NCBI RefSeq assembly: GCF_006345805.1
Contig: NW_021833122.1
Coordinates: 15,323 to 79,322 of the forward strand
Length of the DNA stretch: 64,000 bases
DNA from: Octopus sinensis
Lineage: Eukaryota
Direction of reading: 5' to 3'
In this document: positions 1 to 30,991 of the stretch, piece after piece
Position numbering within the stretch: the stretch's first letter is position 1
Layout: the number at the start of each line of letters is the position of its first letter
Position numbers and translations under genes: made by a program
Notes under the pieces: generated by a model
What the model saw: the letters and a program-made list of their open reading frames with translations, nothing else
Databases searched by the model: none
What the model was told of the DNA's origin: nothing

Positions 1-80
<80 letters not shown>

Positions 81-99
81 ATATATATATATATATATA

Positions 100-139
<40 letters not shown>

Positions 140-148
140 ATGTGTGTG

Positions 149-180
<32 letters not shown>

Positions 181-1775
181 ATGTAGAAACGTAACATACG
201 GGTTGATATGCGTGAGGAAAATAAGACAATGTAGAAAATGCTAAAATGATTTTATCACGAAATACATTTTAGTACTGTTTCCGTCTTTTAGACTTTGTTC
301 ACTAAGAGTAAAATACGAAAAACAATTATATTGCTGAAAGGAACAGAGACTGAGGCAGACTATCTGAAGACTTTGGAAATATCTAACTATTTAAAGACTG
401 TGGAAATATCTACAAAACATTTCACTTAATTTGTTTTCTCCAACTTAATTGTTTTTCTTATTTTACACTTAGTTGAAAAAGTTTAAATGAACGAAACCGG
501 TACTAAAAGGATAAAATTAAATACAAAATAAGTTAATATCGAACAATGAGAATGATTGCTCAACACCACATCAGTGGATAGAGATTTGCATGTATGTGTG
601 TATCTGTGCATATATGCAAAGTACCATATGATGTATAGAGTAAAGTGTGATGTATAATAATTTATGGATCTGCACAAAACATATAAAATATGCACAATTA
701 TATATCATCACTCAATGTTAGTAAATACCGTGAAGTCATCGAAGATGAAAAAGAGATAGCTGTGAATCGAAATTTCGTTGCTTACCTATATGCTGTTAGA
801 GTAGTGGTTGGGTTCAATACTTGATAAGTATAGTCTTAATATCTTGGTGATGTTTACTTGGTTGTTGTTTAGGGAAACAGTGCAGGACTAGTATTAGGTA
901 TGGATTATGCTTGTGCGTAAAATATTAAGGTTTAGTGACGAATGTATCTATACTGTGAAGGTGATGAAAAACTAAAACCATAGTGCATGCTATGAGTGAC
1001 ACGTCTCTTTTATACTAAAGAATAATGTGAACTGAACAACAGAAAGATACATATTCTGTTCGTCAATATAAAGCATATACTCCAGGAAATGTCCTATAAT
1101 CATAACTAGTTCAGTAATTCATTGGAATTAGTGGTATATTATTTAATGAAGTAGACAAACACAACTCCGGGCATTGTGCGCTTTGTTTTATGTGAATGAT
1201 ATTCTTTGACGATTTAGGAGGAAATATTTGGCCCAGTATTCATTTCTAACGTGGACACAAAGCCACGTCTTGAAATAAAAGATAGAATTCTTTAAAATGA
1301 CCTCAGTATTTTGTTAGTAATTCATTTATCGACTCCTAGTGGATAAGGCATTAAGAGGAAATTGGTGGGTTTGGCTTTCTGAAATGTATGTAACGGTAAC
1401 TAAATATCGCAATGTAATTTGTTCGCCACTCTATCGATTTCATCACTCACCGCCCACATATTTGAGACAGTATTAATCAACCAACTTCACGTATGAAAAC
1501 CAACATATGATTATAAAATATGCTTTACTCCTACTAATTATTTACAACGAGTAAATGGTTGGAACCAGTAAGAGAATAGATGGAGATTTTATTGCTCTGA
1601 AATTATGATCATTTCAGTTTTCGACAAACTGTTTATAATTTCCATATAAACTATCATACACACATACATAGACACACGCTCAAACAAACAAATACACACA
1701 CAATACATATATATATATATATATATATATATGCGTGTTTGTGTGTGTATGTGGGTGTGGGTGTGTTTGTGTAAA

Positions 1776-2062
1776 GGCGCATGGCTCAGTGCTTAGAGCA
1801 TCGAGGTTACGATCGTGTGATTGCGAGTTCGATTCTCGGACTGGGCTGCGTGTTGTGTTCTTGAGCAAGACATTTTATTTCACGTTGCTCCAGTTAACTC
1901 ACCTTTGCCTTTCCCGTGGATAACATCAGTTATGTGGAGAGAGGAAGCGGGTATGCATGGGCGACTGCTGGCCGTCCGCAAACAACCTTGCGGGACTTGT
2001 GCCTCAAGGGTAACTCTCTAGGTGCAATTCCATGGTCTTTCGTGACCGAAGGGTGTCTCCTC
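1776..2062 (+). mobile_element. tRNA-derived SINE
   Basis: A-box-like TGGCTCAGTGCTTAGAGC and B-box-like GAGTTCGATTCTC head, then a non-tRNA body ending in an (ATAC)n/(TA)n tail. Confidence 0.8.
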
Positions 2063-2753
2063 CTATACATACATACATACATATATATATATATATACTT
2101 GTCAAATTTTTTTAATATTTTCTCAAGGTTTTCCCTTGTTAACTGTTTTTAACACGTTCTTATTATTATCAAAGAATGTATATATGTATTGTAATATTTT
2201 GTTACAACCAGTACCTAACACAACAAAGATTTTACATGTTACTTTCGACAATCTTTTTCTAAAAAAGTGAAATCGATCAAGTAAATAAACATCTTTTAAA
2301 ATTGCATTTCAAACCTTCTTTCATATATATATATCCAAATAACTTACTCAATAATTTTACATTTTCAATGCAAAACCAAACTGCTAACGACTAATTAATT
2401 TACTCTGGCATATTCGTTAAAAAAATGTGGTTATTAAAATTACATGATTTTCTAATGATATATTGGACTATCTAAGATATTGGACTATCTATGTGTGAGT
2501 GCTACATTAGTAAATTCTTGCATGCATTAATTTCTTTGTAAAAAGAAAAAAGATTGGCATCGTGATGTTAAATACGTTTAAGAAATACCCGTATTAGTAA
2601 GATAATGTTACGATTTTAACCAGCAATGAGACCTTACATGATAAAAGACGCACCTAGTATTCAGGTGGTCAGATACAATGCATTGTGATGATGGTGGAAA
2701 TGAAATACAAAACCCACAAAAACACGTTACTCACCGTTTCTATCTAGTATTAA

Positions 2754-3047
2754 CTAAGATACACAGTCGCATCCAGACTTGTAAGGAGGCCTCTCGTCAA
2801 GAGATTTATGCATTTTGTATGTGCCCTTACAATAACTAAAAAAACCACACATATTAGTCATTATACAACTTGATGCGCAATCTATGAGTGAACGTGCGGT
2901 TTGAGTTCCAATCAACCAGTTATCCAGGCACGCTATCTTGCTCATTTTTCCATAATAACTTGCATGGTTCGATTCGCCAATCTCCAACGTCACGAGAAAT
3001 ATAATGGTGAAAACCCGCAGTAGGTTGTAGAGTACATGCATTTTCAT
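2754..3047 (-). CDS. Left-arm copy of exon A: signal peptide + Cys-rich PAN/Apple-like module (exon 2,735-3,049)
   Basis: 97-aa ORF MKMHVLYNLLRVFTIIFLVTLEIGES...RSLIDCASSCIMTNMCGFFSYCKG...GCDCVS*. Hydrophobic N-terminus and C-x3-C-x5-C-x2-F-x-Y spacing. On the minus strand, a TTTTTCAG acceptor sits 2 nt before the ATG and a GTGAGT donor 19 nt after the TAG. Confidence 0.6.
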   Translation of the reverse strand: MKMHVLYNLLRVFTIIFLVTLEIGESNHASYYGKMSKIACLDNWLIGTQTARSLIDCASSCIMTNMCGFFSYCKGTYKMHKSLDERPPYKSGCDCVS

Positions 3048-3107
3048 TCCTGAAAAATATATAAAGCAATATATACATGTGTGTGTATGTGTGCATGTGT
3101 GTATCTC

Positions 3108-3495
3108 TGTATCCGCTCAGTCGAAGTCGACTCTCAGTCACTCGTTGGATCAGTGTTCTCCAGTCAGTTCTATCATGGGCCGCTTCTTTCAGATTGGATA
3201 TGTCCATTCCGCTATCACTCTTGATGGGTTCAAGCCAGCGAGTTCTTGGTCGACCTCTTCCTCTTTTGCCACTGACCATTCGGAGCATGATGTCCTTCTC
3301 CAGGGATTTTCTCCGCATAATATAACCAAAATATGCCAATCTATGCTTGGCGATCCTAGCTTCTAGCGACATTTTCGGCCTTATCTTCTTAAGAACTTTT
3401 CCATTGGTGAGCCTCGCTGTCCATGGAATCCGCAAAAGTCTTCTCCAACACCAAAGCTCGAATGCATTTATTCTCTTCTGGTCAGCTTTTACTAA
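3108..3495 (-). mobile_element. RTE (BovB-like) LINE, 5'-truncated 3' end
   Basis: Translation RINAFELWCWRRLLRIPWTAR...RLAYFGYIMRR...GKRGRGRPRTRWL...DRTDWR is the typical RTE ORF C-terminus. Confidence 0.9.
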
Positions 3496-4919
3496 AAGGA
3501 AATGGAGCAGTAATATAGTGGATACTTTGTTACATTCATTTGTATCTCGATGTATAAAGTCATACATAAAATATTTGAAATGAAAAGGCATAGAATCAAC
3601 AAAAGAAATAAGCATAAAAGAATCTCCAATATTACTAGGACTTATTATCATTTATTTTCTAAAATCTTATAAACAAACTTCCACAGCTCCATGTATATAT
3701 ATATATATTATATATATATATATATATCGATATTATCCACAAATCTTATATATATGTAATTCACTAGTAAAACAAATTATATTTTTTATATCATGGGAAA
3801 ATCGTAGAGTAAAAAATGTTTGACTACACGATGAAAGGGAGTTTGCTAGTTATTAAAGTTATACTTTAGAAAAATCTAACGGATTATAAAATCTACCTCA
3901 TATTAAACATTTTATTTCGTATAAAAATATAAATTCTCTCACATGTCAGTGCACTATAATTTTTTTATATACATGCTACTTTTCTTAGAACAATAGAAAG
4001 TATAACTTAGTACACCGAAATGCTAAATAATAATAGTTATTATAACTTTTGTCCGAAATACATTCAAAAATATTATCGTAGCATACAATATATCATAGCA
4101 TTTCCCTTTTTCCTCTTTCATATCCTAATCTTTTTGTATCTTATACCCGACATAAAAAATTCATGTGTTTTTCTTCTCCCACTTTTCTCCCATTTTGTTA
4201 CAATTCATTATTTTTCGCCCCTCATAAAATGTTTTCTTGTTTTCTTTCTATAACCTTATTAAATTTTTTGCGCATAAATATTTAAATTCCTCTCCAAAGT
4301 ATGTAAACAACAATTTTTCTCTGAATAAGGAAATTTATACAAGAGTACATTGAAATGCAAAATAACTAATAGTTATTTTACTATATAATACTTATTTTGT
4401 CAAATCTATTATAGTATTTTAGCAAGATTTCATTTGATAATATCACTCCACAGGACCTCGGCGTCCTAATGAATTATTGCTTACGTTATTTGAATATTTG
4501 TTCTTTCGTTATTTGAATATATGTTATTTATTACTTATTTCGTTGCTCACTACCAGAAAGTAAACATCTTCCCTGTGGATATCCAGGCATAATATGGGGT
4601 TATTTTACATGTATCATCGCTCGAATGGAGATGATCTAAATATAATGGCAGGATTGAAACATATGTAGGATTCTTCTATAATTATTTCTTTTGCTGATTC
4701 TGTTTCTTTTAATTTCAAATATTTTATGTATTACTTTCTTCATCGTAACACAAATAAAATTAACTAAGTTTCCAATATATTTCTTTATTTTCTTTCATTT
4801 ACTTTACACATTATTGGTTTATCCAAATATGTTGCAGAACTTTCTTTCAATACATTTGATAAAACCAGTTGATATCTGGATTTAAAAAAATAATATCCCA
4901 GATGATAAAGTTGCAAACT

Positions 4920-4962
<43 letters not shown>

Positions 4963-4966
<4 letters not shown>

Positions 4967-5345
4967 AACCACGTAGTTCCGGGTTCATTCCCACTGCGTG
5001 GCACCTTGGGAAAGTGTCTTCTAATATAGCCTCGGGCCGACTAAAGCCTGTGAGTTGATTTGGTAGACGGAAACTGAAAGAAGCCTGTCGTATATATGTA
5101 TATATATATATATGCGTGTGTGCGTGTATGTTTGTGTTTGTCCCCCTATCATTGCTTGACAACCGATGCTGGTGTGTTTATGTCCCCGTCACTTAGCGGT
5201 TCGGCAAAAGAGACCGATAGAATAAGTACTGGGCTTACAAAGAATAAGTCCTGGGGTTGAGTTGCTCGATAAAGGCGGTGCTCCAGCATGGCCGCAGTCA
5301 AATGACTGAAACAAGTAAAAGAGTAAAAGAGAGTAAAGAGTAATA
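4963..5345 (+). mobile_element. Abundant tRNA-derived SINE (head clipped); left arm only
   Basis: B-box-like GGGTTCATTCCC, internal (TA)/(TG) tract, GAGTAAAA-repeat tail. Same family at 17,530, 43,445 and 63,300. Confidence 0.85.
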
Positions 5346-5384
5346 TATATGTGTGTGTGTGTGTGTGTTTGTGTGTATATATAT

Positions 5385-5418
<34 letters not shown>

Positions 5419-5584
5419 CATACATATACACACAGGGTTAGCCCAAATTAATGGAATCACCTTAAAATTTCGAACAAATTTATCTTAAATTTGTACAGGA
5501 CCGCCTTTCGCAGTAATTAACAACTTGAATTCTACGAAGATTTTAAAAATTATTCCACACGAGGAAGTTGCAAACTCAATATAT

Positions 5585-5637
<53 letters not shown>

Positions 5638-5704
5638 TTATACATTACATGTGCGTGTATGTATATATATATATGTGTGTGTATGTGCATATATATATAT
5701 ATGC

Positions 5705-6306
5705 ATATAAATTCAACAACAATTGAGGAATGGCCTTAATAGGCCATTCGACCCACTAGAAAGAGCAGCCAGGACTCAAACCGCTAAGTAGTAGTAATTC
5801 AGATATTAAAGGAAAATTTAAAACATTTACCCTAATTCATCTTTAGACAATGCATTGTTTCGGTGTTTTTAATGGCAAACCAGCTTAATTAAATTAAATT
5901 AAGTCAATCTACCAAAGGCTACACCTCATCGGTAAAGAAGCCAGGAGAGACAGATATACACGAGGCAGTTGTATCTATGCCCTAGGAATATCTGCCTAAA
6001 ATTTTCAAAACCATCGTACTCGCGCCAACTTATCAGCAGTAAATATAAACTACTGATTCAATTTCAGAATTAGTCAGAAAATCATCAATTAATCAATATA
6101 GGGTAGCAAAAAATTCAATAGAAATTTATCGCCACCAGCGGTCTAGTGAGAAAGAGAAAATAGTCAAGACTATATATATAAATTCAACAACAATTGAGGA
6201 ATGGGCTTAATAGGCCATTCGACCCACTAGAAAGAGCAACCAGGACTCAAACCGCCAAGTAGTAGTAATTCAGAAATTAAAGGAAAATTTAAAACATTTA
6301 CCCTAA
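5705..6306. repeat. ~130-bp direct repeats (5,705-5,835 and 6,177-6,306) bracketing ~340 bp; left arm only
   Basis: AAATTCAACAACAATTGAGGAATGG...ACATTTACCCTAAT occurs twice with about 4 substitutions. Confidence 0.85.
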
Positions 6307-6354
6307 TACATACATACATACATACATACATACATACATACATACATACATACA

Positions 6355-7594
6355 CAGGGTTTGTCCAAAGTAATGGAAACACCTTAAAATATCAAACAAA
6401 TTTATTTAAATTTGAGTAGGACCGACTTTCGCAGTAATTACCAACTTCGATTCTGTGAGGTATAAACTCATAAAAAGTTTGAATTGTTTCCAAAGGAAAT
6501 TGTGTCCAATCTCCAGCTAGAGAGTCTCCAGTTCTTGTAATGGTGATGATGGAATATATCAACTCTTGTTTTACAGAAATGCACCAAAAATGTTCAATAA
6601 TATTGAGATCTGGGGACTGTGGTGGCCAGATGTTCAACTTCAGTAAACATTTTAGCTGTGTTAATTGGTGCATTGTCATCCTGAAACATTGCGTTTCCCT
6701 CCAGAAACAGTTCCGCAACCATAGGATGGATTTGATCAAATGAAATGCTTAGATTGCCTTGACTATTAATTCTACCATAAAGAGAAACCATTGGGCTAGC
6801 GGAAGTCCAATAAATAGCCCCCACGCCAGATCATCACAGATCCTCATCCATGTTTAACACTTGGAAGAAGGCAGTCTGGGACAAATGTTTATTTTGGTTG
6901 TCTCCTCACGTGTACTCGGCCGGTGGTTGGAAATAAGATAAAGGATGAATCATCCGAGAAAATAACTTTTTCAGCTGCTCTAGGGACCAATTCTGTAGGA
7001 TTTTATTCCATTCTAAATGCTTTTCGATGTTTGTATCTGAAGGTAGTGATTTTCTGATTGGAGCCTTCCCGTGAAATCCAGATTTTTGCAGCTCTCGGCG
7101 AAGAGTTTTTGTAGAATCTGGGTCCCGGAGGTGTTCATTAAGCTCTGCAGTAATTTTTCGGGCTGTACTTCTGTGATCCTTTCTAAGAATTTGCATAATA
7201 GTCCAACGGTCCCTATCTGAAAGTATTGTTTTTCTTCCGGAGTTTTGTTTGGACGAGGAGGTTTTTTTACTCTTTCTCAAAGGCTATTATTACTTTCGAG
7301 AGAGTACCTCTTGATACACCAAACATTCGGCTGTTTTCATTAACCTACCGCCTGCCATACGAGCAACAACAATTTCACCTGTTGAAAGTCCGATAGATCT
7401 GTTATTTTAATGAAGTTTACTTTCATTTTTCTGATGATATCTGAAGAGAAACAACTATTTTAGCAAAACATATTAAGCAACACTAATAATAAATCAAAAG
7501 ACATAAAAATCAACAAGCTCTTGATAGTTTTATAGATATTTCAACATTATGATGCTAAGATGTTAGGTGTTTCCATTATTTTGTCCAACGCCTG
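6355..7594 (-). mobile_element. Tc1-family (DD34E-type) DNA transposon, degenerate
   Basis: Imperfect ~30-bp TIRs (CAGGGTTTGTCCAAAGTAATGGAAACACC / CAGGCGTTGGACAAAATAATGGAAACACC). Frameshifted transposase: SGRKTILSDRD..., FQDDNAPIN, WPPQSPDLNIIEHFW. Confidence 0.92.
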
Positions 7595-8600
7595 TATATA
7601 TATATTAGCTGAGATACTTGGCGTTGCTCCAGACTAGAATGGCGTGGTTTATGTATTGTTTTACATGTTTCAGCCATTTGAGTGCGGACATGCTGGAGCA
7701 CCGCCTCTAATCAAATAAATCGACCCCCAGTATTCATTCTTTGTAAGCCTAGTACTGATTTTATCGTCGTCATTTGTCGAACCACTAAAGATTAAGCACA
7801 CGTATTAAATATTAATTTAAGGGTTTGTATGTTACTGTAAATGGCTTGCAAATTTGGAACTGCTACGATAATTATTAACTGGCAATTGTACTGTAAATAT
7901 ATAAACTAAGAGGATCTTAGTGTTGTCGCATGAAAATTGAAAGTGAATGAATAAAAGTGTTACAATATTATAGTGTTATCACATTAGAATTAATACCGGA
8001 AGAATAAAAATGGAAACAATATTATTTCACAATATAGATGTTATTGTTTTACTTTTGACACCTAATAAAGAACCAGTGCAAGACATTGCTCCGGGCCCGC
8101 ATTAGGTGAGAAATTGAAAACGTTTTGGGACCATGATATACATATAGTAAGAGAGACACATACAGGCATATATTTACGCATGTCATAGACACATATACAT
8201 ATGCATGTGTGGATATGTGTGTCCATCTTTAAAGATATATCTAACGTGAAAACACACACACAGTCACAGGGATATATATAATGATGCACTCACACAAACA
8301 TAGACACTCATATACGAAGTATGACGTTGACGCCGAACACGGAAATGACACAAACTGAGACTCGTACACATTCACACACAAACACACACACACACATCAC
8401 ACACATACTCACTCATATAGAAAATGTCACGTTGTCGTCGTCGTTTTCGTGTTCGTATAAAAAGTCGTGAACTATATTTTTCTATAGCAAGATTACCTCT
8501 ATTAAATGTTATATTGTGTTAATCGATTAACGAAATAAAAGCACATGTACGAACTGCTAATTTAACAGTAAATGCCGCAATAATTATTCCATAATTATTC

Positions 8601-8639
<39 letters not shown>

Positions 8640-8640
<1 letters not shown>

Positions 8641-9662
8641 GAGGGGCGTTCAATAAGTAATGCCCCTGACCCACTTGCAATTGTTTGATCTAGCTGAAAT
8701 TTTGCAAATGCAATTATTTATATCTCTATAGATTAAATGAAAAACTACAGCTCTGAACTAATTCTGGTTTATGATTTACAGGTGTTTGAACTGAGGCAAG
8801 TGTGAAATGGAGCCTGTTGAGTGTCGAGCAGTGATCCGGTTTTTGTATTTGAAAGGACGCACACCACGGGAGACTTTTGATGAAATGAAAGTAACTTATG
8901 GTGATGGTGCCCCATCATATGACCTTGTAAAACGCTGGAATCGTGAATTCAAACATGGTCGGAACTCTGTGGAAACAGCTCCCAAATCTGGTCGCCCCCT
9001 TTCTGCCATTGATGAGGCATCTGTCCGTCAAGTTGAGGCTGCCATTTTGGAAGATCGACGCATAACTATTTGCTAAATAGCCCATGAGGTCAAGATTAGT
9101 ACCAGGTCAGTGGAAACTATCATTCATGACCATTTGCATATGCAAAAGGTGTCTGCCAGATGGATTCCCAGGCTGCTCACACCTTTCCAGAAGCAAGAAC
9201 GCATCGAGTGCTCGAGGATGAATTTGGAGATGTGCCAAGATGAGTCAAAATTTTTCAAAAGACTGATTACACAGGATGAAACCTGGGTCAATCACTATGA
9301 TCCAGAGACCAAAGCCGAGTCAATGCAGTGGGAACACCGTGACTCACCTCCTCCAAAGAAGGCAAAGGTGCAGCCCTCCGCTGGCAAGGTCATGCTGACA
9401 GTCTTCTGGGACCAGGACGGAGTAGTGATGACAGATTTCCTGGCAAAGGGTACCACAATTACAGGAGCCTATTATGCTTCACTTTTGAGAAAATTAAGAG
9501 AAGCTATCAAAATCTAGAGGTGGGGCAAGATCAGCAAAGGCATCCTCCTCCTGCAGGACAACGCTCCGGTCCACAAGTTGCGTGTCGCCAGATCAGAAGC
9601 ACAGGCGTGCGGCTATGAACTCCTCCCCCCATCCCAATACTCACCTGACCTTGCACCCTCTG
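8640..9662 (+). mobile_element. mariner transposon (Hsmar2/irritans-like TIR), 3'-truncated with in-frame stops
   Basis: TA|CGAGGGGCGTTCAATAAG end. Transposase motifs WIPRLL, ITQDETW, LLQDNAP, HPQYSPDLAPS; the sequence breaks just before the third catalytic Asp and there is no 3' TIR. Confidence 0.92.
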
Positions 9663-9793
9663 AACGATATTTTTCTATAGCAAGATTACCTCTATTAAAT
9701 GTTATAATGTGTTAATCGATTAACGAAATAAAAGCACATGTACGAACTGCTAATTTAACAGTAAATGCCGCAATAATTATTCAATAATTATTC

Positions 9794-9831
<38 letters not shown>

Positions 9832-9909
9832 AGATAGATAGATAGATTAGATAGATAGATAGACAGATACAGGCATACATACATAAAAGCACATAAGGTT
9901 TGGTAAAGA

Positions 9910-11975
9910 AAATGTGATCACGTGTCTTCGTTCATGCTGTTGTGATTATAAAACCTCATTGTAAACAATGTTCCTTGTTTTTCTTGAGCGTATGTAAAGT
10001 TGTTTGTTTTGTCTCCCACTATTGTGCAGCCAACATACAGTTGTTCGGAAAAAAGGACTCGTCGAAGAATATGCCAGTCACAGACGGCCTGATCCTGGGA
10101 TTTATTAGTTGACATCGGAAAATTGAAACGAAGACGGATCTGCAGTTTTCTGAATGAAATGGGAAATTTCTTCTCCTGATGGGATAAATGGAATTCTTGC
10201 AATGAAAACGTCATCACATTTTCTACATCCATAAATTATTGCCTCGATAAACTGTGGCAACATTTTCTTTACTACCAGTCTTGTCCCATTGAAAGGTCGT
10301 GGCGGTTCTAGATTTCGGTGCAGCATACAGGAGTTCCAACTTTAAATGGTAATAAGTGTGGAAGTAGTCCGTCAGTCTCCAAAGAATTGATAAAGTTTGG
10401 TGGATAAATATTGGTGAATAAATTCTGGAATTGGACCAAGTGATTTATAAGTGTGAAGATAATCATCAGCTGTTCGTTATGTTTATTAACAGCGACGTTT
10501 TTTGGAGACAATATTGCTCTGTGACCAATTGTGGTTTTGGTAATTTTCTGTAAGGTTATGAAATACTTTGTCTTTGAGGTCATCATCATGCGGCGTCTAG
10601 GGGCACCTTGCCATCGCCAAGTGTCAAAATATCCTGTTCAAATGTTGCGGACATTTGGTCAGTATGAAGTTGAGCTCGCACGTTAGTGGTCAGAGTCAGG
10701 ATCGTAACAAGATGACACAGAGGCCAGGACTTCACACTCGCTTGGATCTTATCTGTTCTAGTGCCTTTGGAATGACAAGAAGGATCTGCTTGAAATCAAC
10801 CGAGAACAGAAGCATTACAACTCCCACTGGAGACTGATATATCTAATGTTTCTAGAGATCCCTTGTGAGCCACGGTGCACTCGCACAGACGATGAGGTCA
10901 CACATTCTAAGGACCGGTTCCTGGTCTGAGCTTTTGCTCATGTTGCATGAAGGCATCTCAGATGCTTCTAAATTGAGAGGTAGCTTAAATGTCGAGTGTA
11001 TTGTTCTGCCTCCGGGCAACAAAAATATCTGCAATCCATGAACTGCCGCAATATCTTGGTGCTCCCTGAATCCTGCAAGGTAGAGCGTTGTAACAAATGT
11101 TTTTCTTGTCCCTCGGTGCTCCTGGCAGGTCATATGTGGGTAATTCATTTCCACCCGGAGTATTAATTCTGTCTTCGACGTCAATCAGATCTCTCTTGTA
11201 GACTTCATCGTTGATGCCCTCTATATCAGCATAGAGCAGTGAAACTTGAGGCTTAATGTCTTCACCGAGGTCATTTCTCTACTTGAGCAATAACGAGGAA
11301 AACTCGCACAGTTTGTATGTCTATAGCAATACAGCATATAGTGCCCTGAGACTTTTAGGTGGTTTCGATTCAGCAGAGTCTCCTAAAGTTGCATTCTACT
11401 GTACACGGTCTTTTAATAGACCTTGTCGCATTCAGGCGTCTCTGTACGTTGCGCAGACATAACCATCAACTGAATGAGGGCCAGGAAAGTCGTTGGCCCT
11501 CTGACCTCTTCTAGTAGTAGACGACGTTAGAGACACTCGTGTTGACTGGGATGTACTGTGTAAATCGCCCAAGGCAATTATCAAACTTAATGCCGGGGTA
11601 ACAATGAACATCTTGATCTGCTTTTTTCGGAGGCATTTTTTCAATTCCAGGTATAATAGGATGGAATCTGTTCATACAGCAAGGTTTGAACGAATGAGTC
11701 ATCTTGACAAACCTTAAATAATGCGGTGAGTGTTGTGTCCCTTGGTTCTTCTGCCAACAGAGAAGCATTAACGTCGGTGATGTACACCCAGTGACCCTTT
11801 TCCAGGTGAACTGATGGAAGGTGGGATGTCGCTTGTGAAGTGGAAAGCCAAAGATAACTTCGTTCCTACTTATGTACCGTCACACCTGATAGTAAGTCCC
11901 CTTAACCCAGCAGCGTTCTTGTTGAAGGCCAAATATTGGTGTGTCGCAACCTTTGTTGACATACGTATAAACGTA
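9910..11975 (-). mobile_element. Helitron Rep/PIF1-helicase remnant
   Basis: Frameshifted motifs LLPGGRTIHSTFKLPLNL, FKQILLVIPKG, RAILSPKN, LPFKVGTPV/LHRNLEPPRPFNGTRLVV, NKSQDQ, and the VDGYVCATYRDA linker typical of Helitron RepHel. Confidence 0.88.
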
Positions 11976-11979
11976 CTTG

Positions 11980-12312
11980 ATTTTGCTTTGTCTATTTCTT
12001 AGTATGACTTATTGTTTGTATTTGTCAGCTTCCTTGAATATGTAAACAGTTTTTTGTTTTGTTCGTTTTCTGTGGCTATTTCCATTAGATTTCCTTGCTT
12101 CTGAAGTAGGTATTTTTGCCGTTCTATGGGGGTTATTTTGTAATAGTTTTCTACCTGTATAAGGCCTCCACCACCTTCTATACGTTGTATATGTAACCTT
12201 TCTATGTCAGATTTTGGGTGGTGCATCCTAGATCCTGCCATTATTTTTCTGGTATTCCTGTCTATTTAGGTTAGTTCATTTAGTGCCCAGTTAAGGATAT
12301 TGCAACTATAAC
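11980..12312 (-). mobile_element. Old 5'-truncated R4/Dong-type LINE fragment (left-arm copy, with a ~140-bp deletion)
   Basis: GSRMHHPKSDIERLHIQRIEGGGGLIQVENYYK is homologous to 29,717+. Confidence 0.85.
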
Positions 12313-12405
12313 TTATTATTATTATTATTATAATTATTATCATTATCATTATCGTTGTCGTTGTCGATATCATTATTATTATTACTATTATCATTATTAT
12401 TATTA

Positions 12406-12496
<91 letters not shown>

Positions 12497-12530
12497 ATTA
12501 TTATTATTATATTATTATTATTATTATTAT
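12313..12530. repeat. (ATT)n array: empty counterpart of the LINE-filled (TAA)n array in the right arm
   Basis: Flanks match 28,105 and 31,006 in reverse complement; no LINE is present here. Confidence 0.9.
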
Positions 12531-13308
12531 TCTGTAGATTGAAGCCCCATTAGCAGTAAAAGAGTTCAATCTCCTCGTCAACTTTTTAAACATTTTCTGC
12601 ACTGCGCTGCTAGGATTTCCGTTTAGCAACACAATATGCTTTTCAAGGGGTGCATTTCAATATCTTTAAACTTCTTTCAACTTTCGGTGAAAGCAAATAT
12701 TTTGAAAGATGGCAATGAAAGAAGTAATATGAAAAGAAAGACAACACTAGCGTACCGCTGATAATAGTAAACGACGCCACCGCCAGCTCAGCAAAACCAA
12801 GCACTGAGGCGAACATTTTTGACCCTAGCAGAATCAAAACATCTGACTGGTGAACAAGGCATCAAGTGAACAACAACAACAGCAACAACAAGACCATAAA
12901 AAACTAAATATATCTAAACAATGTAAATGAAAGTGAGTAATTAAAATAGAAAATGTTGTAACTAGCGTGAACACCAGTGCCGCCTCCGTCGAAGCCACTA
13001 CCATGGGCTCTACCATAGAGGCTAGAGTGACTACATCCAAAAGAGATAATGGAAAGGGGATTCGTTTTGCGCTCGCTGCAACAAATCGGAAAGGTTTCCT
13101 TCTGGATGATGAGTTACAACGGGCCGGACGATGTGTGGAATAAAAAAGAAAAACATGCAAGGAGTGTAGCCCTCAAACAACCAACCAAGTTGATGGGAGT
13201 AAAATAGCGCCGGGTTTAGAAATGCTACTGAGATTCAGATTCCAAACTTCCTAGGGAGCATGTGGGTGGCTAAAACACACATGAACTCGAGGCTAGATAG
13301 GAAGATAA

Positions 13309-13354
<46 letters not shown>

Positions 13355-13375
13355 GGTTGGATGGGTGGATGGACG

Positions 13376-13425
<50 letters not shown>

Positions 13426-14575
13426 AGAGAGGGATAACTTTCTTTATCGGCCACGCAGGGCTGAATACAAAGGGGACAAGTACATATGTAGAGCTTTTCT
13501 TTTCGAAGAGGGAAAATGAAAAAAGGAACAAAAAAGGAAACAAATGTAAAATTTCGATCAAAAGGGATCGGTGAAAGCGATCAAAAGGGATCGTGTATCA
13601 CAGAAGCACATTTTTTTTAACAGTAAGAAACAATATTAGGTTCAGAATAAAAGTAAAGTTAGTTCTACTGACTGGTGAAACCAGCTTATCTGTTTGCACT
13701 GGTTTCGATAAAGATGATATGGTCATAAAATAATATCGTGAAATATTTTCCACAGACGTAAAGATAGGTGAACAACATTAACTTACCTTAGAAGTTGCCG
13801 TCAAAATATTTCTCTTTTCTTAAATGCGTTCTTAAACTAAGAGGTATTATGAAGTTGCTTTCTTCTCTCTTCTCAGAGTGCTTTGCAATTTAGATGATAA
13901 GTAAATGATGAACTTTACTATTTGCTTCAGTACAATTTTAATAAATCTCTACTTCTACCCATTGATCATCACAATCAAACCAATCTACTGTATTGATACG
14001 GTTGGTGAACGAAAGAGGTATATTTTAAAATCACAATATATTGACAGTTTAATGTATAACAGCTTTCTGTTGCTTTGGATATATAACACTGGATATATTC
14101 GCATTTTAATTATGGTTCAAACCACTTTACAGTATTTATTTTAATACTGAACTATGCGTATGTCTCTCGCCAACGTCACATTTTGAATGCCAGATTTGTC
14201 TTCGATCGGTTAAGTTGTTAATAATATATTTATTTTAATTCGATACATATTGATCTAACTACAAAATTTAAACATGTTAGAAAATGAAATAATCATGAAA
14301 ACGCATTAACAATTATCCAACAGGTTGTAACGAATTGGTCAAATGCATATACAGTGTGTAAATAAATGTTTGGCAATATATTGTTTCCAAGAACTGAAAA
14401 CATTCAGAAGCTTCCTTCTGATGACCAGGTACCATTTACTTTCCTATGAAGGCTGCCTGCTTATCAGAAAGAAGTGAACATCCTGTCTGATGGCGAATCG
14501 TATCATACACAGAAAGGAGCACAGAAATAAGCAGGGAGAGAAAATAGAAAAAGGTTAAGTGGCTAGCGATCTATC

Positions 14576-14595
14576 ATGAAAATATATATACATAT

Positions 14596-14662
<67 letters not shown>

Positions 14663-14739
14663 CATATATATATCTTATATATCTTATATATATATATACA
14701 TATATATAAATCTTATATATCTTATATATATATATATCT

Positions 14740-14771
<32 letters not shown>

Positions 14772-14872
14772 TATATCTTATATATATATATATATCTTAC
14801 ATATATATATATATCTTACATATATATATATATATATAATATATATATATATCTATATATCTTATATATATA

Positions 14873-14965
<93 letters not shown>

Positions 14966-14976
14966 TATATATATAT

Positions 14977-15072
<96 letters not shown>

Positions 15073-15083
15073 ATATAAATGTG

Positions 15084-15126
<43 letters not shown>
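14576..15126. repeat. Long interrupted (TA)n/(TG)n microsatellite
   Basis: Seen directly; much shorter in the right arm (~26,020-26,105). It explains the spurious IYIYI ORFs. Confidence 0.95.
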
Positions 15127-15129
<3 letters not shown>

Positions 15130-15359
15130 GTAGTACCAGAAAAGGAGGAATTTCGATTATCCCCACGTGGTGAGTTGTAATATATATAAGAGATTAAAAA
15201 AGGAAAATACACACACTTTATGTAGTTTTAATATCATTTTCAATATATCGACCAGTTTCTCTTTTGCTATTCATGATTTTATGGTTTACTTATTTGAATA
15301 TGTATTTTCTTAAGAAAAAAGTTTTGTCCATTTGTGTGTGATGATATTTACGAGTGAAT

Positions 15360-17040
15360 GACTTCACAAGTAGAAAAATAAGAGGAGGTAATTGGTTATC
15401 GTTATTATTGGGAGATAGCTGTTCAGCTTTCCGTAAGGGGAGGGGAATATATATGTACCACAAAAATTGGGTTTCGAAAATCTTGTATAGTGAGGGGATT
15501 TATGTACAGTGATGTAATCGTGAATCAAAAGTGAATAAAAGTTGGTTATGCGTGCATATTAAGACAGTGTTCGGTATTTTCAATGAAAACAGTTTCTTTT
15601 TGTAAACGTTCTCATGGAGAGATTGTGTCTTTGCACTGGTAGAAGGGGGAGGCTGTGAAATTTGTTTGATGTTATCTGCACATTTTTCTATATGTTCAGT
15701 GAGAGGAATTTGCCTGTATTGCCTGAAACAGATTTGCTCTTTATGTAGAGTGGTTCATATTCTCATGGTCATGCTCATCTGTTCAATATAGTTGTGTCTG
15801 CAAAAAAAAAAAACAATTAATGAAGACCCATTAATGAAGAGGCAATAATGGTTACACACGATGTTATCAATCTTTTCACCATCCCACATGACTATGGAAT
15901 AAAAGCAATTAAATTCAGGTTGGAAAAGTGCCCCGAAGTACTTCCTGAACGCATAAATCAGATCTTTACAATTTATAATTCAGAACAATTAGTTCCTATT
16001 TGATGACTTAGACTATCGTCAAAGTTGCGGAATTGTGATGGGAGCGAAAGCATCCCTGTTCTTGCAAACCCTATAATGGGTTATTTTGAATTTACTTTAT
16101 GTGAAGTATCACTTCAGAAATATGGTTACCCATTTTACTTTTACGTAAGAGAAAGTTCGAAAAGATACGTGGAAGACTGTTTTATCATTTGGAAGGAGAA
16201 CATCGACAAACTTTTGAATTTCAAATCAACACTAAATGATATAAATAGTAACATTCAATTCACAATGGAATATAACAAAGAATAGCCCCCATTTTTAGAT
16301 ACCATGATAATAAAAGTCAACAATCAAATCATAACTGACATTTATTATAAACCAACTGACTCAAAACAATATCTCCGCTTTAGCTCTTGCCACCCCGAAA
16401 CACATCAAAATAAATATCCCTTTAAATTTGGCAAAAAAGATTTGCACAATAGTGTCTGAAAGAACAACTCGGGATCTTCGTCTTCAAGGTCTCAAACAAC
16501 GCTTACTGAAAGACAATATCCACCCTCACTTATAGACGAGGGAATTAAACGTGCCAAAACCTAGACATAAAAACACTAAGAACAAAAAAATATCACATTA
16601 CACCTCATCCCAAAACCATTACTATTTATATCAACATACAACCTCATTGTGAGGCGTTCAACACTATTCTGCAAAATCTTCCTTCACTAATAGAGATCCT
16701 AAATTCAACGACATCCTGAAAGCGCACAAATTCATCAAATGCAAAAAGCAACACAAATCGCATCGCTAAAGAGACTAATAACAAATGAGAAGCTTTACAA
16801 AACAACCACGAAACCAACGGTTAAAAGGTGTGGACGCCCAAACTGTAGAACCTGCTCCAACGTACTTGAAGGTTCGGATTTCATTTTCAAACAAGGACAG
16901 AGATTCACAATTAAAACTAGTTTCACTTGTACCTCTGAGAACTTAATTTATGTAATAACCTGCTCAGGTTGCGGACACAACTATATTGGACGGACAGCCG
17001 AGTATGACCTTGAAAAGATGAACGACTCTACATAAAGAGC
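15360..17040 (+). mobile_element. Penelope-like element remnant: RT + GIY-YIG body (15,815-17,040) with its 3' end inverted upstream (15,360-15,801)
   Basis: KRYVEDCFIIW...IQFTMEY (RT) and CGRPNCRTC...NLIYVITCSGCGHNYIGRT (GIY-YIG). The endonuclease C-terminus lies on the opposite strand upstream. Confidence 0.88.
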
Positions 17041-17057
17041 ACTTATGTTATATAATT

Positions 17058-17129
<72 letters not shown>

Positions 17130-17529
17130 TTACATATGTATATATATGTAATTTATAGATGTCAATATTTATCTGTGGGTATCAGATGGACACCTATAAT
17201 GTATATAAGTGTGCGTCTAAGCACATAATAATGCATGGAGCGGTATGTATATGTATACTATTTAAGTATCCATGATTCTACAGGAGTATATATAAATATG
17301 TATATCAGTATGTTTGCATGTATCTATGTGTGTCTATGTATGTATTATGTATGTCTGGATGTATGTATATATCTACTTGCCCTTTTAGTATGTATTCGGA
17401 CACATATAAAAGTATGTTGATTATTATGTGTGTAGTATATATGCACATACAGGGAAGGGTGTATGCGTATGAATGTATAACTGGTTTATATGTGAATATA
17501 TGTATATATATATATATATATAATATATA

Positions 17530-17754
17530 TATATATACTCTTTTACTCTTTTACTTGTTTCAGTCATTTGACTGTGGCCATGCTGAAGCACCACCTTCAG
17601 TCGAGCAATTCGACCCTAGGACTTATTCTTTGTAAGCCTAGTACTTATTCTATCGGTCTCTTTTGCCGAACCGCTAAGTTACGGGGACGTAAAACACCAG
17701 CATCGGTTGTCAAGCGATGTTGGAGGACAAACACAGACACACAAGCACATACAC

Positions 17755-17798
<44 letters not shown>

Positions 17799-17958
17799 GA
17801 CGGGCTTCTTTCAGTTTTCATCTACCAAATCCACTCACAAGACTTTGGTCGGCCCGAGGCTATAGTAGAAGACACTTGCCCAAGGTGTCACGTAGTGGAA
17901 CTGAACCCTGAACCATGTGGTCGGTAAACAAGCTACTTACCACACAGCCACTCCTACG

Positions 17959-17962
<4 letters not shown>
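17530..17962 (-). mobile_element. Abundant tRNA-derived SINE, full length; left arm only
   Basis: Head GGCGTAGGAGTGGCTGTGTGGTAAG...GGGTTCAGTTCC on the minus strand; same body as 4,963-5,345. Confidence 0.88.
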
Positions 17963-18007
<45 letters not shown>

Positions 18008-18029
18008 ATATATATATAATATATATAAT

Positions 18030-18445
18030 CCACCTGGATTACTGCTCACAGCTATGGTCACCCACCAGTGTGAAATTAACAGCGGACCTTGAAGCAATCC
18101 AGAGAAGATTCACAAAGAAGATCGTCTCTTTGCAACAGCTCAGCTACTGGGAAAGATTGAAACAGCTAAGACTCTACTCCCTGGGGAGAAGACGGGAGAG
18201 GTAGAACGGGACGACACTGCATATTGCCAAAGTTCCCAGCGATGCCATTACGCTTCACGACCAGCTTCTGCAAGAGCCTGGGTTTCAAGGGCCCACAGCT
18301 TTTTAATTTAAGGACTTGCACAAAGTAGATGTAGCGTTTTTTAAATCAAAGCTGGACATCTTCCTGTCAAGAGTCTCAGATGAACCTACCTCACGACAAG
18401 AGGTGCAAATCAGAGTAGCTATATCAAACTCCATTCTTCACCAAG
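18030..18445 (+). mobile_element. CR1/L2-group LINE 3' fragment; left arm only
   Basis: HLDYCSQLWSP...LEAIQRRFTKKI..L..LSYWERLKQLRLYSLGRRRER, followed by FKSKLDIFL. Confidence 0.8.
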
Positions 18446-18624
18446 TGCCACATATTTGAGGAGGTTCTTCGTAATAACAGTGTAGCACAAAACGGCAGTG
18501 CATCAGCATGGCCGCAGCTCTGAGCTGAAACAAGAAAGAAAGTATATATATATACATATATATATAACATATATGTATGTATGTACGTATGTATGTATCT
18601 ATCTATGTATGTATCTATGTATGT

Positions 18625-18900
18625 ATGTATGACAGCTGCATCCTCGTTACACGAGGAAAGCCGTTGCCAAGAAGAATTGCTGAATGATTCATGATTGTTG
18701 CCATGCAATACCCTTATAGGATTTTGAAGCCCGGCCACTCCTTTATTACATAATAGAGAATTGTGCTGGCTGGCAGGAATAACAGGTGCCACCATATGCA
18801 CTCTCTAACATGTCTTTTAGATCTCCAACTGAGAGGCATACCCTTCCGCGTTTTACAGACTTTCTGTTAGGAATTTTAATTGTAGTCAACGCCCATTCAA
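18625..18900 (-). mobile_element. Degenerate two-C2H2-finger sequence with (CATA)n tail, probably a LINE (RTE-type) 3' end
   Basis: Inverted homologue of 23,150-23,725. C-x2-C...GL..H..x.H pattern, with an abrupt transition into a tetranucleotide tail. Confidence 0.5.
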
Positions 18901-19114
18901 CTACGTGTGTTTCTATGTGTTTATAGCATATATTGCATTTTAAGCTTTCTGTGTGTATGGTAAATGCTGCATTTCAGCATATGTATGTACATACTCTATA
19001 CTGTGTTTGTAAATTGTATATATATATATATATGTATATATATGTATATATATATATATATATATCTATATATATGTATATATATATATATTATATATAT
19101 ATATTATATATATA

Positions 19115-19189
<75 letters not shown>

Positions 19190-19814
19190 GTATATATATA
19201 TGCATATATATATATATATGCATATATATATATATGCATATATATATATATAATATGCATATATATATATATATATATGCATATATATATATATATATAT
19301 ATATGCATATATAATATGCATATATATATATATAATATATATATAACTGGAACCACGTAGTTTCTGGAATCAAAGAGAAATCAGGCATGCACAGACTAGA
19401 TTAATGAATGGTAGATAAATGAATAATTAATTAACAGCGATCTCAGTCTTGTTTAATAAATTTTGAACACATGGAATGAGGAGTTTTTTTAGGTATTAAG
19501 AAAGCAATAACGGGTTTGTTATATATGCAACGCATAGACACACATACAAATGAATATAGACATATAGATAACTATATGCAAAAACATGCAAAATACATGT
19601 ACATAAACACACACACAACATATAAATACATATACATATATATATACGTTTACATATTTGTTTTGCAAGATTTTTTATGTGAAATCGTTTATTGAAACAG
19701 ATATTGTTGTATTTCGGAATGGTCATTTTGCCAGTTTAGCCAATAAAAACACACGCACTATATATTTAGTGTTACTTTGCTTCAGCGTTATTTATTTTTT
19801 ACATTAATCTTAAT

Positions 19815-20960
19815 CTTATTTCGGCCAGAATTATTTCGTCACACTCCTGTGACCGCATCAGTAGTCCTTTGCTTTCTTCTTTCTTATTTGTGTGTCTCTG
19901 GAGAGGCTTATATTCAATCCCTACAAAAACAATATCGAAACCCTGATAACAGTAGCCCAAACGATAGCTTAAATCTAACCAAGCACAGACACACTAGAAT
20001 CAACCATGAATTAAAGAAAACTTATAAAAGACAAATTGAATAACTACCGCCACAAAATTTAATTTTCGCTCCAAGCACCCAAAACAAACAGACCTAACCG
20101 AAAATATAAAACCATGACGTCATTTGGTATAACCCAATCTGGAACATCTCATCCAATATCGCGAAACAATTTCTGACCACTCTGATCGCTGCTTCCCTAA
20201 AAATGGAGTGTACAGCAAAATATTTAACCGTCATCCTATAAAACTATCCTATGCAAATTCATCAAACTTAAAGCACCATGTCCATAGGATTAACAGCGGT
20301 AAACTGAGACGGAGGGTAGTTAGCACTCAAAATAACCTTCTTGACATTAACCATAACTCATACGACTAACGTAAAAACAACGTTTATACTACCAATCAAC
20401 AGAACAATACTTAATTTTCCAAGATAACCATCTTAAAAACAATACAAGCAACAAATCAAATAAGTAACTGAGAACACCTAATGATAATAAAATGATTATA
20501 GTAACACCAAAATACCGAACAGCACCAATCACTCCCGCGCTCGATGTGCACAAACCACCAAAATCAAGCCGTTATTCTCATGCAGAGATAAATTCAATTG
20601 CCCTTTGGATAACCAATATATGACTAAGAACGGCGTATATAAGTGCACTATAAACATTCGAAGAGGCCCCTACATATATATGGGGTAGCAGCTGAGTTTT
20701 TCAAAAGTCGATACCGCAAATACATGGCCAGATTTCGAAATATCCTCAAACGACATGTAACTGGCCGATTTTATCATAACTGGCCGATTTTAACATAACT
20801 GGCCGATTTTATCTGGCAATTTAAGGAAGCAAAGACAACCATACATGATCCATAGTTAGACATGCGAGTCCCTACAACATTATATCCCGCAAATGCCAAT
20901 TATGCTCCGAGGTGTCACTCTCGATAATGTTGACAAAGGCGCGTATTATAAATAAAGTCA
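19815..20960 (+). mobile_element. Penelope-like element remnant (second subfamily; RT thumb + GIY-YIG)
   Basis: Frameshifted VIWYNP...KIFNRHPIKLSY and CRDKFNCPLDNQ...VYKC...FFKSRYRKYMARF motifs. Confidence 0.7.
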
Positions 20961-21199
20961 CTCAACATTTACCCGGATGCCTACACGTAGCTAAACACAC
21001 ATTTATACACTACAATCAAGATAATACATAACTTGATATATACATGGTAGCACATTATTTTATGCACATGAACTAGAGGAACCATATTTGAATACCCTGT
21101 ATTTGACATATGATCATGCCATCTAGATCTATCCATGTACATATATGTATAAGTGTATATGTATGCATGAAAAACAAAAATATATATAATGTATATGTA

Positions 21200-21241
<42 letters not shown>

Positions 21242-21509
21242 TTATTTTCTTTGCTCGACTGCAGCCAGTGTCTTATTTCTATTTTTCGGAGTTTTTAAAG
21301 TGCTATTAGCGTCTTTTCGCTTCTACTTTCTATAGCGTGGACGGATTATAGCCAATCCCTTGTTTAACATTTGTAAAGTTTACCCATCAAAATTATATTT
21401 CCGTGGTAAAATCATTAATCATTTTTACATTTTAGTATTATAATATATATATATAGGCATACATTCAAATAAATACGCAAATGTTTATGCATATATATAT
21501 ATATGTGTA

Positions 21510-21548
<39 letters not shown>

Positions 21549-21569
21549 TACATATATATATACATATAT

Positions 21570-21876
21570 CGCCGTCATCACCGTGACCGACCAGGCTATC
21601 AGATGTTACTACACATCGCTTGTCACATTGCGCTTCACATTGTTTTAGCCTTCAAATTACGCCACCCCACTGGCTAAGCGAGTAGGCCAACAGATGCAAG
21701 AGTTAGAGAAAGTTGTGGCGAAAGACTACAGCAGGGTTCACCCACTCCTTGCCGGAGCCTCGTAGAGCTTTATGCGTTTTCGCTCAATAAACGCTCACAA
21801 GGCCCGGTCTGGGAATCGAAACCTCGATCTTACAACCGCGAGTCCGCTGCCCTAACCACTGGGCCATTGCACCTCC
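21570..21876 (-). mobile_element. tRNA-derived SINE (head related to 1,776-2,062)
   Basis: Minus strand GGAGGTGCAATGGCCCAGTGGTTAGGGCAGCGG...GGTTTCGATTCCCAG (A and B boxes), then a non-tRNA body. Confidence 0.8.
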
Positions 21877-21974
21877 ACACACACTCACACACACGCACAC
21901 ATATATATATGCACACACATAGATACATACAACTGCTTAATATGAAATACAAACACGGACCCATAAACACACTA

Positions 21975-22260
21975 CACTGAACTCTAAGACCAGTCCAAAA
22001 CCAACGAACCATGACAGACTAGCTCGGAAATAATGAACTATTTTTCCACAAATTATTCGAAATCAGATCATGCCATGCTTTCCCCCTCCCAACGAACCTT
22101 CCACACTATTTCTTAAAATGGTAACTATCCTTGCCAAACACGCATACATGACAGGAGAGGAAGAAAAATGTTTGATTAGTTCCCTAAAATTCTGTATAAA
22201 TATTTCAATATGATTTCTGATGTATTTTTCACTAGGTAATACACGCTTTCGCATATCAAA
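21975..22260 (+). repeat. Old dispersed repeat, possibly a Penelope-like RT fragment; related copy at 42,535-42,740
   Basis: Shared CTCTAAGACCAGTCC..AAAACC..GAACCATGACAG.CTAGCT and CCACACTAT..CTTAAAAT blocks. Confidence 0.55.
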
Positions 22261-22648
22261 TACTATCTACATATGCTTTCTGCACATATAATTATAAACA
22301 ATCATAATTTTTCATTAACTTAGTAATAATTATGAATTTATTTCACTGCCTATTTTGGACACTTTTATGCGGACTGTTTAACCACAAAGCCCTGCCTGAC
22401 ACTTTCTTGTCATAGTCAAAGACTATCACTGTGTTTTAATACATCAATATTAACTATTTTTAACACTGCAAAGGCTACACAAAGCCTTACACTTCACTTT
22501 TGAAAGTCTTTTTTAAAAACATTTGAAACCAGTCAAGATAATAAACATATTTAAAAGACCTCTGCATTTTAAATACTCCTCCCTATATATTATCACTCCT
22601 GCGGTACCTTCAAACCTTACTTTGTTATGTATATATATACATATATAT

Positions 22649-22702
<54 letters not shown>

Positions 22703-23024
22703 ATATATATACATACATACATATATACATATATATATATATACATACATACATATATATATACACATTATATACACACACACACATATATACACATTTA
22801 TATACACACACACACACATATATATATATAAATTAGAAAAAAACACTATGTAATTCAAACAATGATAGACATGAACAAATCATAAAGAAAAAATAAAATA
22901 TAGAACTAGATCACAAAAAGTAAAATGAATAAACAATAACAATATATACAATATATAAAATATATGCAATATATAATAACTAAAAATATTTTTTATTATT
23001 ATTATTATTACTATTGTTATCATC

Positions 23025-23055
<31 letters not shown>

Positions 23056-23149
23056 CATATTGTATATACACAATATACAATATGTACATACACATACTGA
23101 AATACAGTACTTAAAATGCAATATATGCAATAAACACACACAAACATAC

Positions 23150-24053: not shown

Positions 24054-24105
<52 letters not shown>

Positions 24106-24124
24106 CAGAAATTATATAACGGAT

Positions 24125-26049: not shown

Positions 26050-26105
<56 letters not shown>

Positions 26106-27247: not shown

Positions 27248-27298
<51 letters not shown>

Positions 27299-27323
27299 CA
27301 TCCGTCCATCCACCCATCCAACC

Positions 27324-27369
<46 letters not shown>

Positions 27370-30930: not shown

Positions 30931-30991
<61 letters not shown>

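Follow-up and report, generated by a model that had tools for sequence, protein, structure and literature searches.

Repeated arm-to-arm gene conversion as the best explanation for a patchwork of identity in an old inverted duplication of Octopus sinensis

Contig NW_021833122.1 of the Octopus sinensis assembly GCF_006345805.1 contains, in the 64 kb analyzed here (positions 15,323 to 79,322 of the forward strand; hereafter the window, from whose first base all coordinates are counted), a large palindrome whose two arms resemble each other in an uneven manner: stretches almost free of substitutions alternate with blocks in which 7-10% of the positions differ. We consider repeated gene conversion from arm to arm, acting on an old inverted duplication, the best explanation for this patchwork, and we put its probability at about 0.75. 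An earlier note on this DNA, made by eye and from the letters alone, had proposed conversion on the kilobase scale between the arms of an old duplication, and the proposal is supported by the mosaic itself, by divergence that has accumulated on both sides, by the placement of insertions and deletions (indels), and by a young rearrangement that both arms now have in common.

By repeat search and BLAST, the left arm is collinear with the reverse complement of the right one, the two lying in inverted orientation around a unique spacer (Table 1). Each arm measures 19 kb or more and consists of dead transposon sequence, and the inverted duplication is probably both real and old. The runs of (TA)n that flank the spacer (19,017-19,345 and 22,626-22,835) are long and impure and read alike on both strands, and (AT)n runs are also found at other tract ends, at 1-117, 4,930, and 8,610-8,636; such runs may be points of breakage or termination and also pose a risk in assembly. 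We aligned the left arm globally with the reverse complement of the right arm using MAFFT, listed all differences, and segmented the substitution pattern by penalized binomial likelihood, with tract coordinates given as left-arm positions. The 426 substitutions in 14,858 aligned columns correspond to 97.1% identity between the arms, and ~62% of the aligned columns fall in tracts that are at least 99.9% identical. While the arms are longer than 10 kb, their identity does not stay above 99% along the whole length, with blocks at 90-92% and inner ends at ~80%.

Four stretches are almost substitution-free (T1 to T4 in Table 1), and two further ones are intermediate, at ~1.8% and ~3%. Substitutions at 118 and 130, just outside T1, adjoin a (TA)n run; the three length differences within T2 are all in simple runs; and the differences within T3 include one substitution (10,728), a single-nucleotide indel (10,768), and a 3-nucleotide difference in the length of a (TA)n run (8,625). 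Of the intermediate tracts, we read the one at ~3% as an older conversion, and the other, T5, is broken up by an (AT)n run whose length differs between the arms. The diverged block D1 carries left-only inserts of 413 bp (an element resembling a short interspersed element [SINE]), 911 bp, and 384 bp. In the inner part of D3 (17,000-17,366), identity falls to 76-81%, and overall, the divergence climbs toward the center of symmetry, from 7.8% through 10% to ~20% at the inner ends. Chance can be excluded as the source of this mosaic: the longest mismatch-free runs observed span 3,972, 2,150, 1,275, 1,152, and 635 columns, whereas in 10,000 shuffles, the longest run had a mean of 228 columns and never exceeded 505.

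The tract list that the earlier note had drawn up by eye proves essentially right, although the 1.8% stretch, T5, is missing from it. Its estimates for 4,869-8,615 (~85-92% identity with large indels), 11,999-12,310 (~88%), 12,540-12,810 (~96%), and 15,250-17,100 (~90%) are recovered as D1, D2, the ~3% tract, and D3; its near-identical tracts at ~8,620-11,998, for which it had counted one substitution and one 1-nucleotide indel, and at ~12,850-13,970 are T3, where both differences are confirmed, and T4. Two entries needed amending. The tract described as near-identical at ~240-4,868 does consist of the substitution-free T1 and T2, but the 7% island between them had been missed; and the ~80% identity given for 17,130-19,020 holds for 17,000-17,366 and for the innermost homology, while what lies between is an insert found in the left arm only.

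Table 1. Coordinates of the palindrome, its tracts and inserts, and the transposon-derived features of the arms (window positions; left-arm positions for tracts)
Feature	Position	Strand	Partner or second copy	Description
Left arm	1 to ~18,944	+	41,696 to ~23,110	Collinear reverse-complement match; outer edge beyond window start
Right arm	23,110-41,696	-	1-18,944	Same collinear match
Spacer	19,346-22,625	.		~3.3 kb; without arm homology; long (TA)n runs on either side
Identical tract T1	131-765	+	41,567-40,933	0/635 columns substituted
Unconverted island	766-893	+	40,932-40,805	9/128 substituted (7.0%), 8/9 transitions
Identical tract T2	894-4,868	+	40,804-36,830	0/3,972 columns substituted
Diverged block D1	4,869-8,577	+	36,829-34,876	147/1,894 substituted (7.8%)
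Identical tract T3	8,578-12,003	+	34,875-31,438	1/3,426 substituted (0.03%)
Diverged block D2	12,004-12,388	+	31,437-30,931	~10%; old LINE fragment followed by (TTA)n run
Right-arm-only insert	28,213-30,930	+		2.7 kb; 5'-truncated LINE; adjoins D2 in the alignment
Intermediate tract	12,430-12,786	+	28,212-27,853	~3% diverged
Identical tract T4	12,787-13,978	+	27,852-26,695	0/1,152 columns substituted
Intermediate tract T5	13,992-15,382	+	26,694-25,765	16/875 substituted (1.8%)
Diverged block D3	15,383-17,366	+	25,764-23,744	193/1,910 substituted (10.1%)
Left-arm-only insert	17,367-18,577	+		~1.2 kb; SINE-like element and piece resembling a LINE 3' end
Innermost arm homology	18,578-18,944	+	23,773-23,110	~80% identical (BLAST)
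167-bp unit, copy 1 (L1)	8,468-8,634	+	34,983-34,818 (R1)	
167-bp unit, copy 2 (L2)	9,661-9,827	+	33,789-33,623	
RTE/BovB-like LINE tail open reading frame	2,920-3,651	-		Homology search; inside T2
Tc1-like transposase, broken	6,392-7,280			In D1
Mos1-type mariner, 3'-truncated	8,639 to ~9,700			5' inverted-repeat end at 8,639; in T3
Helitron-type PIF1 helicase pieces, broken	~9.9-11.9 kb			In T3
Old LINE fragment	~11,980-12,414			In D2
Penelope-like fragment, putative	~16-17 kb			From the appearance of translated open reading frames only
Degenerate C2H2 zinc-finger-like open reading frames	18,427-18,973 and 22,940-23,736			At both inner arm ends, directed away from the spacer

The contents of the identical tracts bear directly on one alternative, under which these tracts would be functional elements kept identical by extreme constraint without any conversion. 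We found no point in its support and regard it as hardly credible. The identical tracts hold only frameshifted or truncated transposon genes together with microsatellites, so selection on coding sequence cannot explain the 100% identity; scans for Rfam families and transfer RNA genes returned no RNA family and no transfer RNA; and constraint would not keep 3,972 bp of this kind of DNA entirely unchanged directly beside blocks that are 8% diverged.

The distribution of indels follows that of the substitutions. All 21 indels of at least 8 bp, among them the SINE-like insertion in the left arm and, in the right arm, the 5'-truncated long interspersed element (LINE), are confined to diverged blocks or their edges, with none inside the identical tracts, whose lengths differ between arms at just eight places, by 1-5 nucleotides and nearly always in microsatellites or short single-base runs. 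Several tract ends coincide with the breaks in homology. T3 starts in the (TA)n run at 8,610-8,636 and ends precisely where the left arm has a 133-bp deletion (aligned as 8 + 125 bp, about 11,998-12,018), which is derived in that arm because the right-arm bases align to a younger LINE copy; the limits of T4 are a 39-bp indel at 12,804, which shows CTGA microhomology, and a 13-bp one at 13,979; and T2 stops ~60 bp short of the (AT)n run at 4,930 that bears the SINE-like insert. The earlier note had likewise placed tract ends at a ~140-bp deletion, a 39-bp deletion, and a ~13-bp indel; all three are present, and (AT)n runs can be added to the list.

The identical tracts could, in principle, be the original state and the diverged blocks the novelty: a young palindrome, identical throughout, in which ectopic conversion by dispersed transposons or fast mutation has produced the differences. 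Every diverged block does contain transposon sequence with relatives elsewhere in the window, and donors for such ectopic events thus exist. However, when we polarized the private changes using the extra copies of the elements within the window as outgroups, the derived sites in the old LINE fragment of D2 numbered 9 on the left alone, 7 on the right alone, and 31 in common, and those in the SINE-like fragment of D1 numbered 9, 8, and 31, respectively. Of all the copies, those in the two arms are most closely related to one another, and they have drifted to similar extents. If one arm had been replaced, one-sided changes and few shared ones would be expected; the two-sided pattern implies that the duplication is old and that neither arm has been simply overwritten or wrongly assembled. 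Moreover, the arm-specific insertions all avoid the identical tracts, and the separate diverged blocks are similar in their divergence, at 7.0, 7.8, 10.3, and 10.1%, as a single old duplication predicts. A young palindrome with secondarily diverged blocks is, therefore, very improbable. With an old duplication as the background, at least three levels of divergence can be distinguished, 0%, ~2-3%, and 7-10%, with the inner ends reaching ~20% by BLAST, and conversion must, under repeated arm-to-arm exchange, have taken place at different times rather than in a single event.

The small diverged island at 766-893 sits within ~4.7 kb of otherwise identical sequence. Possible explanations are that it is the gap between two independent tracts, a patch restored while a single long event was being repaired, or an ectopic patch of later date. 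Hypermutation resembling A-to-I editing was considered as its origin and rejected, as the A/G differences go both ways.

The left end of T3 offers some information on the direction of the exchange. A 167-bp unit is present in two copies per arm, flanking a truncated mariner element, and the first copy of each arm lies partly outside the tract. Within that part, 8,468-8,577, the two left-arm copies (L1 and L2) agree against the first right-arm copy (R1) at seven sites, L1 and R1 agree against L2 at two, and L2 and R1 agree against L1 at none; the (TA)n length likewise pairs L1 with L2. The copies L1 and L2 are ~1.8% apart, compared with ~7% between the arms. As L1 groups with L2 against R1, the 1.2-kb segment of mariner and unit appears to postdate the divergence of the arms and to have its origin in the left lineage; its present identity in the right arm would then reflect transfer from left to right. 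The simplest reading of the sequence is thus copying in the left-to-right direction, at least for the left end of T3, with the 1.2-kb insertion or duplication carried along. A stretch of this length copied to a place where it had no counterpart would suggest that gap repair or synthesis-dependent strand annealing was involved, beyond mere mismatch correction in a heteroduplex. The structure of the segment is unusual in itself: the 167-bp direct repeat ends in (TA)n, and the enclosed mariner possesses the 5' inverted-repeat end (8,639) yet lacks a 3' end. A normal mariner insertion leaves a TA duplication only, and the repeat with its mariner looks like a tandem duplication or a product of templated repair rather than a normal mariner insertion.

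Since the analysis builds on an assembled sequence, two technical explanations deserve closer attention. The first is a false duplication, in which two haplotypes of one locus have been joined head to head, perhaps through self-complementary (TA)n, and the patchwork is allelic variation. The long (TA)n runs on both sides of the spacer, reading alike on both strands, can seed wrong joins, and a mosaic of identical and divergent sequence with polymorphic transposons resembles the haplotypes of highly polymorphic marine invertebrates. The runs are, however, only 200-330 bp long, below the length of long reads and the overlap that assemblers require, and the window contains zero Ns. Haplotype bubbles are normally resolved in direct orientation, whereas the arms are inverted around an asymmetric spacer of 3.3 kb. 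A divergence of 7-10% over ~4.3 kb, inner ends at ~20%, and 21 indels of at least 8 bp exceed by far the allelic diversity known for cephalopods, and the gradient of divergence toward the center, possible in a real palindrome, is not expected of two alleles. We regard a false duplication as unlikely.

The second technical explanation accepts the palindrome as real but ascribes the apparent 100% tracts to polishing, in which pooled reads from both arms have erased arm-specific variants. Long-read polishing is known to fail in this way in repeats that exceed about 98-99% identity, and if reads from both arms were mixed, the tracts scored as identical could be 99% rather than 100% identical. Polishing cannot turn 90% into 100%, though, and at 8-10% divergence, reads map unambiguously; the contrast between low and high divergence, and with it the inference of conversion, would survive even if some variants had been lost. 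The eight short length differences and the one substitution that remain within the identical tracts suggest that the arms were built separately, and the 128-bp island with 7% divergence lies within an identical stretch. A collapse during polishing is accordingly improbable as the source of the pattern. A different kind of origin, a foldback-type or giant transposon with long terminal inverted repeats, is disfavored as well, the arms being a collage of unrelated transposon fragments and not the two ends of a single element.

Returning to repeated conversion between the arms of an old duplication, movement of sequence between the arms is indicated by a mosaic beyond chance, by old two-sided divergence, and by a young rearrangement common to both arms; this evidence is indirect but consistent. 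Several points weigh against our interpretation. The conversion events are deduced from a single assembled sequence, and the possible effect of mixed reads on the identical tracts has been mentioned above. The left arm begins at base 1, and the outer edge of the palindrome is thus outside the window. The argument for the direction of transfer uses only nine informative sites, and patchy conversion between the unit copies within the left arm is an alternative that also fits, though less parsimoniously. Finally, the GC (guanine plus cytosine) content, about 33-37% in the window, gives no clear signal of biased conversion: the length-weighted means are ~36.9% in identical and ~33.1% in diverged sequence, a difference confounded by transposon composition, and the individual identical tracts are inconsistent (32.5, 41.6, and 38.3%) next to diverged ones at 29.8-34.8%.

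We infer the repair mechanism, the barrier effect of diverged sequence, and the continuing activity from the pattern, the last of these, the "ongoing" conversion of the earlier note, from one haplotype. A break in one arm would be repaired by copying the other arm, with the same chromatid folded back on itself, through synthesis-dependent strand annealing or double-strand gap repair, and each event would overwrite roughly 0.6-4 kb. Events at different times would then leave tracts of 0%, ~2%, and ~3% divergence on a background of 7-10%, with ~20% at the inner ends. The tracts would stop where the arms cease to match, whether because of a large indel, a transposon inserted in one arm only, or an (AT)n run; blocks of ~90% identity offer only short perfect matches and may, together with the large indels, block both the initiation and the extension of conversion. 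Such barriers would split the palindrome into separate conversion domains. Taken further, the locus could be a neutral, gene-free palindrome that is falling apart, in which conversion persists in near-identical islands, is fenced in by blocks whose divergence and indels have gone beyond what recombination tolerates, and spreads insertions such as the 1.2-kb mariner-plus-unit segment between the arms, but in this full form we consider the scenario doubtful.

The process itself is textbook, and tracts of several kilobases are already documented for the human Y palindrome P6, where conversion tracts average 2,068 bp and the longest exceeds 9 kb (PMC3723533); the 0.6-4 kb tracts observed here are within that range. 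As in the palindromes of mammalian sex chromosomes (P1-P8 of the human Y and those of the primate and mouse X), inverted arms surround a spacer and, in our reading, exchange sequence by conversion. In our palindrome, divergence and rearrangement are strongest at the inner ends, which resembles the instability of primate X palindromes, where rearrangement clusters near the center of symmetry (PMC8327919). Palindromes of mammalian sex chromosomes are, on the other hand, more than 99% identical from one end of the arm to the other and bear expressed gene families (10.1101/800185, PMC8327919), whereas the arms here are 97.1% identical, have blocks of 7-10% divergence interposed, and contain nothing but transposon debris. 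The human IGK locus with its proximal and distal units is, like ours, an old inverted duplication that is partly homogenized and partly diverged (PMC11327106); duplications of that type carry functional genes, and selection may shape their mosaic, while the sequence here appears neutral. The sex-chromosome palindromes of willow demonstrate that palindromes homogenized by conversion arise outside mammals as well (PMC7023750), but they bear genes and belong to a nonrecombining sex-determining region, whereas ours is known from a 64-kb window and has gene-free arms. Our literature searches brought up no case of a cephalopod palindrome with gene conversion. A more apt description of the locus is that of an inverted duplication, old, decaying, and free of genes, in which conversion apparently continues, and what it adds to the known cases is evidence for old two-sided divergence, for tract ends at breaks of homology, for several tract ages, and for the directional transfer of a young insertion.

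The remaining features confirm the character of the arms as transposon sequence. Their open reading frames (ORFs) are broken fragments of transposons; no host gene could be established, and instead of multicopy protein-coding gene families, the arms contain only broken transposon ORFs. An exact look-up of three arm ORFs in public assemblies gave no match, and the homologues of the LINE-tail ORF and of a LINE ORF belong only to widespread LINE families (BovB/RTE-like; one also in starfish, corals, and fish). The LINE restricted to the right arm (28,213-31,006) has RVT_1 and zf-RVT domains in long broken ORFs and is 5'-truncated; it sits in a (TAA)n microsatellite and has an (ATA)n tail of its own (30,931-31,006), which suggests that it targets matching microsatellites. 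At the DNA level, the sequence closest to it is found in a Logan contig from SRR7158634, with 92.5% identity. More broken LINE ORFs, kin to this element, are found beyond the palindrome at 51,908-53,746. A SINE-like family of ~400-520 bp is represented by copies at 4,963-5,354, 17,500-18,027, and 43,410-43,930 and by fragments at 7,659-7,788 and 35,617-35,752; the copies are 80-91% alike and often lie beside (AT)n runs, and one of them is an insertion in the left arm only. In the Penelope-like region of D3, the ORF fragments at 16,007-17,032 in the left arm and at 42,102-42,467, just beyond the right arm, are alike, and a GIY-YIG-like motif seen by eye in one such fragment suggests Penelope-like elements; a Pfam search of the D3 ORFs gave no significant support for this identity. 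No database homologue was found for a C2H2-like ORF of 70 amino acids in the inner right arm, where a tandem duplication of ~280 bp (23,173-23,453 and 23,454-23,736) is also located. The entire 64 kb appears to be transposon-rich and without a recognizable host gene.

For practical work, the locus is a warning to genome assembly and variant calling, as identical tracts of 1-4 kb within a diverged palindrome are easily collapsed or mis-phased. A bolder version of our interpretation would hold that transcription of the locus into a long hairpin RNA is the reason why its perfectly matching transposon arms are maintained; if true, such an RNA could feed small-RNA silencing or be a substrate of ADAR, which would be notable in a coleoid cephalopod. 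The locus provides a clean natural example in which breaks of homology set the tract ends, tracts of multiple ages coexist, and an insertion has been copied between the arms. It suggests that arm-to-arm conversion on the kilobase scale is intrinsic to inverted duplications and independent of a sex-chromosome context or of selection on gene families, and as a cephalopod case, it is a starting point for estimating rates of conversion in this group.

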